Under the pieces are notes generated by a model, which saw only the letters and a program-made list of their open reading frames with translations, was not told where the DNA came from and searched no databases. The position numbers were made by a program, and so were the translations under genes. From Octopus bimaculoides (taxonomy: Eukaryota): DNA of 53,246 nt. Shown one piece after another: positions 7,362 to 30,029 of this stretch. Position 1 is the stretch's first letter; each line of letters opens with the position of its first letter. The stretch lies in NCBI RefSeq assembly GCF_001194135.2, contig NC_068990.1, forward strand, positions 54,452,588-54,505,833, read 5' to 3'.

Positions 7362-7413
7362 ATGGAACAATATGGCGAAGGAGTTAAGGTTTTGCAAGAA
7401 CTTCTTGATGTTG
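7362..7413 (+). CDS. P4HA-like: P4HA-like gene 1, first visible exon (MEQYGEGVKVLQELLDV/D; TPR-like substrate-binding region); more 5' exons lie upstream or in gaps
   Basis: tggtcag acceptor and gtaagt donor. 52 nt, phase 0 to 1. Joins the 8727 exon as ...LLDV-D-PHNKRA, matching P4HA1 'KLLELDPEHQRA'. Confidence 0.8.
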
Positions 7414-8023
7414 GTAAGTTGGTAAATGATTTAGTTTTTGTTTCCTTTTCCTGTCTTTGGCAGCATGGATGACTGATATCTTTTGTGGATTTATAAGATT
7501 AAATGATATCTTATGACTGGTTAATATTTTCAGGTATGGCTATTTGGTAAAGAAGTTCACTTTAAAACCAAATGGTTCTGAGTTCATTTCCTCTATGCAA
7601 CACTTTGCACAAAAGTCTTCTCCCATATCTTGTGAATGGAAGGGACATAAACATTTATGAGAAAGCAGAATCCAGTGTTTTGTGAACAATATGAAGCTAT
7701 TAGGCATACATAACCAGTGACACTTTTTGCCCACAAATTATAACATAATAAATAATCCAGTTAATAAACAAACAAAAAAACAAATCAAAAAGGATTGATT
7801 TTTTAATGTCTTTTATTTGAACTTTGCACAGAACTGTTGTTCAGAAACTATTTAAAGAGTATTTCAGCCCAAGAAACGACCTCAGATGCACTGTCATTTG
7901 ATTTTTAAATTATTAATTAGTTCCTTTCTTTTTTAGTTAATCTAATAATTATTTTTTCAATCTTAGGTGGAGGAATGATGAGTTAAACTAGAAAAGAACC
8001 CAGACACAGGTTCCAAGCTTTGT

Positions 8024-8215
8024 TTGGTGCACAAATGGCTGTCTGGTCAAGAAGTGTATTTTGCATTTCATATATGATATGGTTCCAATTTCATGGTGCA
8101 GGACTTTGGCCAAGTGTTTCTAACATTAGTCTTGGATTAACTTAGGCTTTGTGACTGAAATTTGATAGATGAAAACTGTACAGAAACCTGTTGTGTGTAT
8201 GCATGAATGTACATT
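8024..8215 (+). mobile_element. Degenerate CORE-type tRNA-derived SINE (same family as 52192)
   Basis: 'tggctgtctggtcaagaag...actttggccaagtgtttct...gctttgtgactgaaatttgatagatgaaaactg' parallels the 52192 copy. Confidence 0.55.
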
Positions 8216-8726
8216 TGTTTCAGTGAGGAAATTATTGACAAACCAGTGCATGAAAAAAAACATACCTTGTGATATTCATTCCAGACACTTCCTTATCATT
8301 TTCACAATAGAAAAGACAATGAATCAATGATTGGTCCATTGGAAACCTATTTCCAACGATGTTGTTCATGAAATGGATCTTATAAAATATAAAATAAATA
8401 ACCAAATATGAGTTTCCGTAATATTACACATAGACTGCTACCTTATACACAGACAGTCATTGTAACTTTACAATTTTTGTCTTTAAATATAGACATTATT
8501 AACATGTAACCTTTAAATGTGGGCCCCAAGCTCAAAGACTACCTCCCCACCATCACCACCACCACACATTCACACCTGGGCCCTACAGACTATAGATTAG
8601 ATTTCTCGCTGATTCTTGTCATTCTACCAATAAAAGTTGATTTCCAAAAATGAGATTCTTTAGAGATATTTCCTTCCAAAAAATTGCCCTTTACCATATC
8701 TAAAATACATGCTATTTTTGTTGTAG

Positions 8727-8878
8727 ATCCCCATAATAAACGTGCAAAAGAAAATAAGAAGTTTTTTGAGAAGAAACTGAAATCCCCAAAAAAGGCCCCA
8801 GGCAAAATGGAACCTAAACTGCCAGAAGATTTTCAAGAGGCAAACTATGAGAAATTATGTCTGAAACAAGTTGTTCAG
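8727..8878 (+). CDS. P4HA-like: P4HA-like gene 1 exon (DPHNKRAKENKKFFEKK...NYEKLCLKQVVQ)
   Basis: ttgtag acceptor and gtaaat donor. 152 nt, phase 1 to 0. Aligns with P4HA 'DPEHQRANGNLKYFE...YEMLC'. Confidence 0.88.
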
Positions 8879-8949
8879 GTAAATTAGTTTGTCTTTTTTT
8901 ACCGTTAAATGATGCAGCCATGTTTGCTTTTCAGAAAGGTATGAACATC

Positions 8950-26647: not shown

Positions 26648-28275
26648 GACTGCAGTGTCTGCAGAGGTAAATGGTAATTATCAGTTAACTGTAAAATACA
26701 AGCAATTAAAAATAGAAATGATTTGCTTTGAGCTTTGACATCTGATAGACTGTTATCTCTATTCAATGGAGACAAGAAGCGTTCTGTTTCCTACCACAAT
26801 GAGGAAAAATTCTCTACTTTTACTGCATGATCATTCAAGTGAATTCTTTGACCCATTTTAACAGAATTATTACGTTTGTTAATAGCATAGCACTATATGA
26901 GGCTTCATATATATGTTAAAGGTTATTCCCGATTGTTATACAATCCCTGAAAATTTGATAATGAAATCTATTTATAAGGGTTTTTTTTTGTTTTTATAAT
27001 AGATATTATTGTTAATGAAATGTGTGTAAGATAATGTAATTAAATTATTTGTGAATAGTCTCTCTAGTTTTGCTTTTTTCTATATGTAATCTATGATATT
27101 GCTATGGAGAGTAGTGATTAGAAACTTGACTATAGTTCACAAGATCTCTTTTTAGTTTTCTCTTTTGATATATATATATATAAGGATGTACTGGTTTTAT
27201 CTATAATGCATTAAAAGTCAGCTTGAATCTTGGTTGGTTGGCTAGTTGCTTGCTTGCAATGTTACCCAGCCAAACTAGCACATAATAGAGAAATACTATG
27301 AATTGAGTTTCCCCTGAAATGTAAATACAAATGGAATAAAATAAATTTCATATAAATCGGACAAGTGGTTGTGGACATATTAAGAGTTTTCAGGGTATAA
27401 ATACCCAAAACGGTGCATAATGGGAAAATTCTCCGAAATTAACTTAATCCTGAAAGGGAAGAAACTCTTACCTTTCGATTAGTCACAGTGACTTGATAAC
27501 AAAAAAAATACGATTTGTTTTTTAACAGTAAATGTATTTTAATCATTTAGAAATATTTTTAAGTGAATGTGATTTCAAAAATGTAAGTTGTTTGTACAGT
27601 AAGTATTTATATTTTAGCTTTCTTTAAACAGACAGTATCTTAATGTTTTTAAATTATTTTCAAGTGAATACCATTACAAAAATTCTTTTTGGCATATTTA
27701 AAAAATATTCTAAAATGAAAATGATGGTAAATATTTCGTAAAAGACCTGTTCATAACCTCAGTGTGAAATAATTTCTTTCCATAGGTTTTTTGCAAGTGC
27801 ATTCACCGTATTTCACCTGCAAAGATTTGGCTGCTATTTCTAGCAAGCCCTGCTACCACATAACAGTTATTTGTGATAAAGGACCTGAAATACCTGTTAC
27901 GTTGTAGCAGAGCATGCAACAAATAGCAGCCAATTCTTTGCTTTTCTGGGGAAAGGAGCTGTTTACACGTGATTTCGATGTCACATTCATTGAAAGCATA
28001 TGAAATAACCTGGAAAAGAAAAAAAAAAAACCCATGAAACAAAACTCCATTGCTGGGAAACTCAGGTTTTCCCAGTGACCCAACAGGTCATGGGTAGTCT
28101 AGTGTCATATAATTTTAATTAAAATTATACTATACTGTTATATGTGTCTGTGATTTTGTATATACATACATACATACATGCATACATATATGTATGTGTA
28201 TAAAGTCATATTATTACCGTTATATACAGTAATATTAAGGTGGCTAGCAAGTTCAGACCTTTACAGGCACAATAT

Positions 28276-28682
28276 ATAGTAATTTAAGAAAAGTAGGGTA
28301 TAAAATCAAAGCCAAAGCTCAAAAAAAAAAAAAAAACCACCATAAAAATTACGATAAAGATACACATGAGCAATGCATTTAACATCTATTTCTAAAATAT
28401 TCACTACATTAGCTCGTGAGCATCTCTAACTTTAGAAATAGATGTTAAATGCTATTTTCAACTGAAGATCACAAAGCATGTTTATCATGCAAAGCGCGAA
28501 ATCAATTGGTATTGAAATATGTATTACTTATCTTTGTATTCCATTCAGAGGTAAGCCTATTTCTGAACTGGTCATTGCATTGCTCATGTGTATCTTTATC
28601 ATAATTTTTATGGTGGTTTTTTAGAGCTATGACTTTGATCTTAGCAAGTGGTATTTATACCCTACTTTTCTTAAATTACTAT
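28276..28682. mobile_element. Non-coding element with about 100-bp terminal inverted arms, an internal perfect 22-bp hairpin and a hammerhead
   Basis: Arms 28276-28377 and 28576-28682. Hairpin 28375-28396 pairs with 28431-28452. Confidence 0.82.
28456..28517 (+). ncRNA. Type I hammerhead ribozyme fold with intact core
   Basis: TTTCAA-CTGAAGA-TCAC.AAA.GCATG(TTTAT)CATGC.AAA.GCGC-GAAATCAATTGGT-A-TTGAAA. Confidence 0.8.
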
Positions 28683-28943
28683 GAATGTATATATATATAT
28701 ATATATATATTTATACTGACCATTTAAAAGTGGATGTTGCATTAGAACACACAAATACTGCAATATTTACCAAGAGAGAAAACTCTCATATGGTTATTCG
28801 GTGTATAAAAGCATATCATAGCTATCATCTGCAGCAGACAATCACTACTGCTTCGACTGCCAGGACCTCCAGATCACATGATTTCAGCCTCTTTTTATGT
28901 ATATGTATGTTGTCTGTATATATATGTGTGTGTGTGTGTGTAT

Positions 28944-29317
28944 GGAGGCACAATGGCCCAGTGGTTAGGGCAGCAGACTCACGGTCATGGGATCATGGTT
29001 TCGATTCCCAGATCAGGCGTTGTGAGTGTTTATTGAGAGAAAACACCTAAAGCTCCATGAGGCTCCAGCAGGGGTAGTGGCGAACCCTGCTGTACTCTTT
29101 CACCACAACTTTCTCTTATGCTGTCTTCCTCTTCCTGTTTCTGCTATACCCGTATTTCAAAGGGGCACACTGTGACACGCTGAATCTCCCTGAAAACTAT
29201 GCTAAGGGTACACGTGTCTGTGGAGTGCTCAGCCACTTACACATTAATTTCACAAGCAGGCTGTTCCATTGACTGGATCAACTGGAACCCTCATCATCAT
29301 AACTGACGGAGTGCCAC
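28944..29317 (+). mobile_element. tRNA-derived SINE family D
   Basis: A-box TGGCCCAGTGG (28954) and B-box GGTTTCGATTCC (28997); non-tRNA body shared with 50148. Confidence 0.85.
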
Positions 29318-29883
29318 GACAATGTTGTATATATATATATGTATGTATAAGTTTATATTTGTATGTGTTTATATGTTTATATGTATATTTCTGTTTGGCT
29401 TAATATGCAGGATTATTGAATCACATCCTGTTAATATTGTTTTGTGCCCAAAGCAAAAACACTAAACAATTGCCAGATTAGTTTAACTGTATATAGGTAC
29501 CATGCAGAGGTGAGATTTAATTTCATAACCAGTGGAAGCACTAAATAATTGATATGATGGCCATCAAATATTAATGCTCACTGACTTTCTTCATCTGGAT
29601 ATGCCATAAAACATGATTATCACACTAAGAATGAACTAAACAGAACAGAAGGAGACACATGGGCTAGAGAGTTGCTGAAGAGGTCACAGGACATGTGATG
29701 AAAAATTTCCAGACAAAGGATATAAAATAAGAATAATAATAAACAAGTGAAGATTGAATATATAATGCTTGTGTTTATTTGTCAAGAAGAAAAAATGACC
29801 GTCGTGAAATATAACAATAAACTAAGAATGTTTATAAATATTGTTGAGAAATGAACAAAAACTCTATTTTCTTTAAATTACAG

Positions 29884-30029
29884 TTGCCTCTATTGGGTAC
29901 TATGAAGGCAAAGCTGATTACTGTCGAATGACAGAGAGAAGAGCGTGGGACTTGCGATGGCGACCACAAAAGAAACAGAAACCACAAGTAACTATGAATA
30001 ATACTGTTAATGAAAATAAAAAAGTTTAA
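29884..30029 (+). CDS. P4HA-like: P4HA-like gene 1 probable terminal coding exon (L/ASIGYYEGKADYCRMTERRAWDLRWRPQKKQKPQVTMNNTVNENKKV*)
   Basis: ttacag acceptor, phase 1 as required. 48-codon open frame that is richer in GC than its flanks. Weak match to 'VSNKWLHERGQEFRRPC'. AATAAA at 30015 and 30344. Confidence 0.65.

Follow-up and report, generated by a model that had tools for sequence, protein, structure and literature searches.

A probable conserved pseudoenzyme of the collagen prolyl 4-hydroxylase alpha-subunit family in Octopus bimaculoides

Collagen prolyl 4-hydroxylase (C-P4H) is the central enzyme of collagen maturation, and its alpha subunits have been treated as uniformly catalytic, with catalytic residues described as fully conserved in the family (PMC9676403). 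A gene in a 53,246-nucleotide (nt) stretch of the Octopus bimaculoides genome (hereafter, the window) raises the question of whether such a subunit can lose its active site and still be kept by selection. The original prediction, made from the letters of the window, had proposed that this gene encodes a non-catalytic protein maintained by selection, as opposed to a pseudogene in decay. Our analysis supports this proposal through orthologues, spliced messenger RNA (mRNA) from the cuttlefish Sepia esculenta, strong constraint over deep divergence and a deficit of coding insertions and deletions (indels). It is very probable that the gene is a conserved pseudoenzyme, a dead C-P4H alpha paralogue with exons 5–14 in the window, and not a pseudogene, because a mollusc-wide group keeps the reading frame, a cuttlefish expresses it and purifying selection is evident at depth. 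The locus itself is already annotated; the catalytic death of the gene and of its mollusc relatives has apparently gone unrecognized, and our literature searches found no description of the dead clade, a result that does not disprove the existence of one.

The window begins at position 54,452,588 of CM046610.1 in the public assembly GCA_001194135.2 (offset 33194 in the public locus L004) and is identical to it, N-gaps included; it has 36% G+C, many microsatellites and nine N-gaps. The exon chain was built by a mechanical search for exons between AG and GT, using the lengths and phases of the original prediction, with ambiguous small exons settled by homology. Ten exons on the forward strand, from 7362 to 30029, total 903 nt and encode 300 amino acids and a stop codon with no internal stop, and all of their splice sites are GT–AG with good polypyrimidine tracts. 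This open ten-exon frame, as first proposed, is matched residue for residue by an independent model: the translation is identical to residues 268–567 of XP_052827168.1 (P0172), the O. bimaculoides ‘prolyl 4-hydroxylase subunit alpha-1 isoform X1’, and to the C terminus of isoform X2 (XP_014787032.1). An exact protein-to-genome chain search of the public locus gives 14 exons, the same ten being exons 5–14. Exons 1–4 are found 14.7–30.5 kb upstream, outside the window, and their 267 residues comprise a hydrophobic leader, P4Ha_N and the greater part of the TPR domain, so the Met codon at 7362 specifies an internal residue and the window alone holds a C-terminal fragment; the intactness seen in the window applies to the C-terminal 300 of 567 residues.

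What has happened to the active site? With numbering and residue roles taken from the structure of the human P4HA2 (C-P4H-II) catalytic domain with protein disulfide isomerase (PDI) (PMC9676403), all six Fe(II)- and 2-oxoglutarate-binding residues prove to be replaced. Exon 10 (21603–21647, 45 nt, IRNFGLQGFFAPLHA) carries Leu in place of the iron ligand His430 (21639–21641), Ala in place of the iron ligand Asp432 (21645–21647) and Phe in place of the 2-oxoglutarate contact Tyr421 (21612–21614). Exon 12 (25233–25301, 69 nt, LNDVLEGAEIVFPFANITTTVKK), in which GGATVFP has become GAEIVFP, has Ile for the 2-oxoglutarate contact Thr467 (25260–25262). Exon 13 (26250–26322, 73 nt, GSALFWYAIHLYPAVCPLSHGSLW) has Pro for the third iron ligand, His501 (26286–26288), and Leu for the 2-oxoglutarate contact Lys511 (26316–26318). 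The alignment bears out all four losses noted originally (PHFD to PLHA, distal His to Pro and Lys to Leu) and adds those of Tyr421 and Thr467. Exon 13 also shows the 8-residue deletion that had been reported before the distal His, which turns out to be common to the orthologues, and the loop after HxD, in exon 11, is approximately 10 residues shorter than in the human enzyme. Both hallmarks of an active enzyme, the His-X-Asp...His triad and the Lys511/Tyr421/Thr467 contacts, are absent from the gene. With all six ligands replaced, the protein would almost certainly be incapable of proline hydroxylation.

Four cysteines, in contrast to these lost ligands, are kept. In human C-P4H-II, Cys294 and Cys504 form an internal disulfide, and Cys311 and Cys529 link the subunit to PDI (PMC9676403). 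Their octopus equivalents are encoded in exon 6 (8727–8878, 152 nt; Cys294 at 8858–8860), exon 13 (Cys504 at 26295–26297), exon 7 (13040–13204, 165 nt, containing RLYCYLHPTHKQLLFGKAEILSLKPRIIIFHD; Cys311, the link to the PDI a′ domain, at 13067–13069) and exon 14 (29884–30029, 146 nt including the stop codon TAA; Cys529, the link to the PDI a domain, at 29922–29924). Exon 7 additionally encodes a hydrophobic Leu/Phe at the position of Ile324, a residue that plugs into the PDI b′ pocket of the human complex (PMC9676403), and the octopus side chain fits such a pocket. After its last cysteine, exon 14 encodes a clade-specific basic tail beginning CRMTERRAWDLRWRPQKKQK.

Is the dead active site peculiar to one octopus genome? 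Word-indexed protein searches with the 300-residue model, and with a fragment of a neighbouring canonical P4HA gene, gave no useful match; orthologues were found by an exhaustive search of 1.84 billion representatives. The top match, P0002 (213 bits, full-length at 554 residues), agrees with the octopus protein in its substitutions, its deletion and its unusual C-terminal tail. Full-length cephalopod orthologues that share these losses and the deletion come from O. sinensis, O. vulgaris, Argonauta hians, S. esculenta and one further cephalopod, and those outside the cephalopods from five gastropod species in four genera (Lottia, Haliotis, Nucella and Biomphalaria, the protein of the last also fitting the clade) and from the bivalves Solemya, Magallana and Sinanodonta. 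The original prediction had named disrupted orthologues as evidence that would count against it; full-length open reading frames are instead found in cephalopods, gastropods and bivalves.

The members of this clade have derived features in common. A deletion of 7–9 residues in the betaVI–betaVII loop leaves a spacer of 8–10 residues between Trp and Cys504 in 12/12 aligned members, versus 17–18 in 80/80 other P4HA proteins. In the same 12/12, Ala466-Thr467 is replaced by an acidic residue or Gln followed by a hydrophobic residue, and all four cysteines are invariant. Compared with canonical subunits, GGATVFP changes to GG(E/D)(I/V/L/F)VFP. Every member has hydrophobic residues at the positions of Tyr421 and Thr467. 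Single ligands survive in places (Asp432 in Argonauta, Lottia and Haliotis; His501, by alignment, in Nucella and Biomphalaria), and the full His-X-Asp...His triad together with Lys511 occurs in no member. Neighbour-joining bootstraps on p-distances recover a split holding all 12 clade members and no HDHK protein in 60/60 replicates. A bootstrap on Kimura distances for the exact 12-taxon split (6/100) was discarded, the distances being saturated and producing invalid logarithms. The distance tree alone could reflect long-branch attraction, and the shared deletion is the stronger character.

Two further observations concern the clade and its surroundings. Just past the GG(E)IVFP strand, every cephalopod orthologue has an N-x-T sequon (N-I-T or N-V-T; 25278–25286) that the aligned canonical enzymes lack, a candidate glycosylation site particular to the clade. 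Partial loss of catalytic residues is also seen in P0094 (Tubulanus), P0044 (Potamilus), P0076 (Logan), P0043 (Liolophura) and P0138 (Ostrea), all of which keep the long betaVI–betaVII spacer, and catalysis may have been lost more than once in the lophotrochozoan P4HA-like family.

The full-length octopus protein (XP_052827168.1) matches the Pfam families P4Ha_N (PF08336; 61.7 bits, cut-off 25.3) and TPR_P4H (PF23558; 43.8 bits, cut-off 27), only the last helix of the latter lying within the window. A profile of the clade matches the N-terminal and peptide-substrate-binding domains of human P4HA1 (4BTA) with 120 bits and the P4HA2 catalytic domain (7ZSC) with 81 bits (E 5.6e-22), the latter over residues 14–251 of the 262-residue chain. 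All the features that mark the C-P4H alpha family are found: P4Ha_N, the TPR domain, a C-terminal double-stranded beta-helix (DSBH) with the C-P4H N-terminal extension, and the four cysteines. The gene encodes a full-length alpha-subunit-like protein, with a leader that is a putative signal peptide, P4Ha_N, TPR and a DSBH homologous over the whole catalytic domain. Judged from sequence, both descent and architecture place the protein in the C-P4H alpha-subunit family.

The orthologue is transcribed in S. esculenta. Two Logan contigs from S. esculenta runs SRR19578105 and SRR19578113, both juvenile RNA sequencing (PMC9538352), are each 2–4 kb long and represent spliced mRNA, because they carry the whole open reading frame without introns. 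P0180 (Logan), which shares a 90% cluster with the Sepia contig, is found on 72 contigs.

Selection was assessed at two depths. Between P0002 and the Sepia sequence, both decapod-type transcripts, the C-terminal half has dN 0.18, dS 1.37 and omega (dN/dS) 0.13, and the N-terminal half has omega 0.08; between Octopus and decapod-type sequences, synonymous sites are saturated (pS >0.75, with pN 0.31–0.33). Over the whole coding sequence, O. bimaculoides and O. sinensis differ by 53 non-synonymous and 24 synonymous substitutions (omega 0.565, P=0.02), with omega 0.43 in the N-terminal half. Their 1704 nt of coding sequence diverge by 4.5% with 0 indels, whereas their introns show 198 gap openings in 22.8 kb aligned, a rate from which approximately 14.8 coding indels would be expected over 1704 nt and 7.8 over the window's 903 nt. 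Stops, frameshifts, lost splice sites and lost exons were sought in the 14 exons of the two Octopus genomes, and none was found. Protection of the reading frame is thus clear, as is strong constraint on the family over deep divergence. The dN/dS test that the original prediction had suggested is only partly passed: the dead domain shows omega 0.13 at depth, and the Octopus pair does not give a clean result over the same region, as set out below.

Could an intact active site be hidden in the assembly gaps? The original prediction had allowed for alternative exons carrying an intact HxD in the N-gaps, for example at 21796–22573. Three gaps fall in introns of the gene and are also present in the public assembly: 11061–11791 (between exons 6 and 7), 17191–17295 (between exons 8 and 9) and 21796–22573 (between exons 10 and 11). 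The orthologous locus of O. sinensis (L001) contains no N anywhere and agrees with the O. bimaculoides gene in all 14 exons, their lengths and their GT–AG sites, and the intron-less mRNA contigs of Sepia and a second cephalopod run straight across the gap-bearing junctions. When 14 canonical P4HA proteins were compared with the gap-free O. sinensis locus and with the window, only the known exons were recovered, with no extra exon bearing an intact HxD; the 1541-nt O. sinensis intron 10, free of N, likewise holds no alternative HxD exon. The introns of O. sinensis thus offer no such exon.

The gap at 21796–22573 itself is probably due to a trinucleotide microsatellite, (TAC)n(TGC)n(TAC)n, which occupies 21648–21795 directly after the exon-10 donor gtaagt and runs into the gap. 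The O. bimaculoides gene spans 53.2 kb, compared with 29.5 kb in O. sinensis, with almost all of the excess in introns 1, 3, 4, 6, 8 and 10; this is either a large lineage-specific intron expansion or an inflation by gap-size estimates.

The remaining exons complete the chain. Exon 5 (7362–7413, 52 nt, MEQYGEGVKVLQELLDV), which contributes the final TPR helix to the peptide-substrate-binding domain, has the acceptor ...tggtcag/ATG and the donor G/gtaagt, and gives a weak TPR_P4H match on the 300-residue model. For exon 7, tblastn gives E 1.8e-6 with canonical P4HA and E 4e-17 with the orthologue. Exon 8 (13765–13811, 47 nt, MHSMLEHNIYKYEMQ(G)) was one among five mechanical candidates; the exact chain and the orthologues (MLSMSDKGSYKYHIQG in P0002) settled the choice. 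Exon 9 (19777–19885, 109 nt, ISLDAKMKSQKQNELKRHFTNLKNLVFPPLESSVME) has a degenerate version of the canonical RVSKSAWL motif, and exon 11 (24451–24495, 45 nt, PVPSTGGQIGSFLVA) supplies the equivalent of the G-N-R-I-A-T-W-L-F-Y core strand. A 45-nt alternative at 20922–20966, which would leave approximately 25 core-strand residues missing, was rejected, the homologous exon being 24451–24495. The TAG just before 25233 was considered as a dodged in-frame stop and that idea was also rejected; it is a real acceptor, because the RefSeq model splices there and the canonical neighbour has a matching exon boundary. A doubt about exon 14, which barely resembles the canonical last exon, was dropped, as its tail is conserved in orthologues.

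Several observations weigh against a conserved pseudoenzyme, and part of them would suit a decaying pseudogene, unitary or duplicated, whose open frame arose only from hand-picked exons. The spliced transcripts analysed come from S. esculenta and a second cephalopod, and not from O. bimaculoides itself. Over the C-terminal 300 codons, the Octopus pair has omega 0.705 (32 non-synonymous and 12 synonymous substitutions, P=0.20), and exon divergence in this comparison (4.9%) is near that of introns (5.86%); because this omega is not significantly below 1, either the dead domain is weakly constrained in Octopus or the test is underpowered. Pfam 2OG-FeII_Oxy_3 (PF13640) was not detected in single-sequence searches of the 300-residue model or the full protein, and the model scores 21 bits against human P4HA2, compared with 112 bits between human P4HA1 and an algal enzyme. 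An AlphaFold2 model from a 4-sequence alignment has a mean predicted local distance difference test (pLDDT) score of 43.8, with values <50 at residues 307–567, too poor for a test of the fold. The peptide-groove tyrosines are only partly retained, and are uninformative either way because they vary in canonical protostome enzymes too. PDI binding, dimerization, residence in the endoplasmic reticulum (ER) and inactivity are all properties that we infer from sequence. The 45- and 47-nt exons, moreover, had several mechanical candidates. Against a pseudogene stand the residue-for-residue agreement with the independent RefSeq model, the preservation of all 14 exons, their lengths and their GT–AG sites in O. 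sinensis, full-length frames in cuttlefish, gastropods and bivalves that all carry the one derived deletion, an omega of approximately 0.13 at depth, 0 coding indels where approximately 15 are expected, and the spliced Sepia mRNA. We regard decay as extremely improbable. It is only marginally easier to believe, and still very improbable, that the protein remains an oxygenase or other enzyme with different ligands. O. bimaculoides does have a His at position 431, directly after the lost His430 (PLHA), and another in LSHGSLW, and Asp432 or His501 is kept in some clade members; however, PLH is PLY in O. sinensis, O. vulgaris and Argonauta, so these histidines are not conserved even among octopods, and the lack of a full triad with Lys511 in any member, together with hydrophobic residues at Tyr421 and Thr467 throughout, argues against it.

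A harder distinction is where in a living protein the function resides. The protein could work through its N-terminal dimerization and TPR domains, for example as a PDI-independent binder of proline-rich peptides that is secreted or resident in the ER, with the C-terminal domain a weakly constrained remnant. We judge this unlikely, while giving it real weight. In both comparisons, constraint is tighter on the N-terminal half than on the C-terminal one (omega 0.43 versus 0.71, and 0.08 versus 0.13), and the clade-specific basic tail after the last cysteine sits comfortably with such a role. In human C-P4H-II, the betaVI–betaVII loop near Ser492 touches the CGHC loop of PDI domain a (PMC9676403), and because the clade deletion removes this betaVI–betaVII loop, the PDI interface cannot equal the human one, a further point for this reading. 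The same C-terminal half, however, shows strong constraint at depth, its four cysteines, two of them PDI-bonding, are invariant in 12/12 members across a very deep split, and the tail motif is itself conserved in cephalopods.

For a conserved pseudoenzyme, the likeliest role, to which we give slightly less than an even chance, would be that of a PDI-bound non-catalytic alpha-like subunit folding in the ER, because the four cysteines, the hydrophobic residue for the b′ pocket and the dimerization and TPR domains are all kept. The protein would enter the ER, fold as an alpha subunit and bind PDI, would form homodimers through its N domain, or heterodimers with a catalytic alpha subunit, and would then act as a scaffold, modulator or binder of proline-rich peptides and not as an enzyme. 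Of the roles put forward in the original prediction (a chaperone, a PDI-sequestering subunit or a partner in mixed tetramers), the PDI-bound and mixed-tetramer arrangements fit the kept PDI-linking cysteines and dimerization domain, as far as residues can indicate. More tentatively, we propose that molluscs may possess a dedicated non-catalytic C-P4H alpha-like subunit that predates the split of cephalopods, gastropods and bivalves, docks PDI through the two conserved cysteines, forms homodimers or joins the catalytic alpha subunit, and tunes or targets the hydroxylation of collagen or of another proline-rich protein.

A possible catalytic partner for such a mixed dimer would be at hand in the canonical P4HA gene, which lies tail to tail with the dead gene on the reverse strand, with the two stop codons 14.9 kb apart, and extends past the right end of the window. 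Its last three exons (52897–52829, 51830–51734 and 44991–44921) have the distal His and Lys intact, and an annotated fragment of the gene (P0026) has the Tyr, the His-X-Asp and the Thr. Two of these canonical exons match exons 12 and 13 of the dead gene in phase: exon 12 has the same length (69 nt) and boundaries, and exon 13 differs by a 24-nt deletion.

The rest of the window is rich in repeats. Positions 1–3300, within the 14.7-kb intron 4, have a GC skew of −0.4 to −0.6 and CA-rich simple repeats that read as THTH... or CVCV... in all frames. Intron 4 also contains, just before a gap, a reverse transcriptase (RVT_1) fragment at 6032–6403 (−); another, at 42314–42817 (−), is intergenic and adjoins retroelement-like open reading frames at 41372–42088 and 42823–44338, with no match where Pfam was consulted. 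Two PIF1-helicase-like (Helitron-type) fragments, at 31888–32298 (+) and, within an intron of the canonical gene, at 50477–51169 (−), have near-identical peptide stretches (…GYIDTT.IGH.VSS.D.LCS..YP.LTTEYIKP.WLHDR.VLAPTNAAV.TLNYNL.SKLPSQECC) in common and are copies of one repeat family. Between exons 8 and 9 lies a 166-residue open reading frame (15611–16108, +) that lacks a Pfam match and has a Cys/Tyr-rich pattern loosely like that of 41372–42088; it may be a transposon remnant.

If the proposed role is true, the C-P4H family would gain its first described pseudoenzyme subunit. The clade also extends the short list of 2-oxoglutarate-oxygenase pseudoenzymes. The clade is a natural separation-of-function variant that could reveal non-catalytic roles of alpha subunits, such as PDI docking, substrate capture and tetramer regulation. 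Automatic naming labels its members ‘prolyl 4-hydroxylase subunit alpha-1(-like)’ or hypothetical protein, and the former label would mislead counts of functional hydroxylases in mollusc genomes.

How does the octopus protein compare with known systems? Canonical C-P4H alpha subunits (human P4HA1, P4HA2 and P4HA3; Caenorhabditis elegans PHY-1 and PHY-2) have the same three-domain layout and the same four cysteines, and the canonical octopus neighbour also shares its exon boundaries with the dead gene over the last three exons, whereas the octopus protein has all six ligands replaced, shorter betaVI–betaVII and post-HxD loops and an added basic C-terminal tail. In C. elegans, both subunits of the mixed PHY-1/PHY-2/PDI tetramers are active. 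CRTAP and SC65/P3H4 are non-enzymatic paralogues in the prolyl 3-hydroxylase (leprecan) family and act as obligate partners in collagen-modifying complexes of the ER; they lack the dioxygenase domain altogether, whereas in the octopus protein, of the C-P4H family, the domain is still there and the active site alone is gone. The clade profile matches CRTAP (8K0E) weakly, at the level of the TPR (E 0.0097). JARID2 and the second DSBH domain of Tpa1/OGFOD1 have, like the octopus protein, a DSBH fold without the metal triad, used for binding or scaffolding, but they belong to unrelated subfamilies that act in the cytosol or nucleus and do not partner with PDI. By analogy, CRTAP and SC65, together with these other DSBH pseudoenzymes, would be the nearest functional counterparts of the octopus protein.

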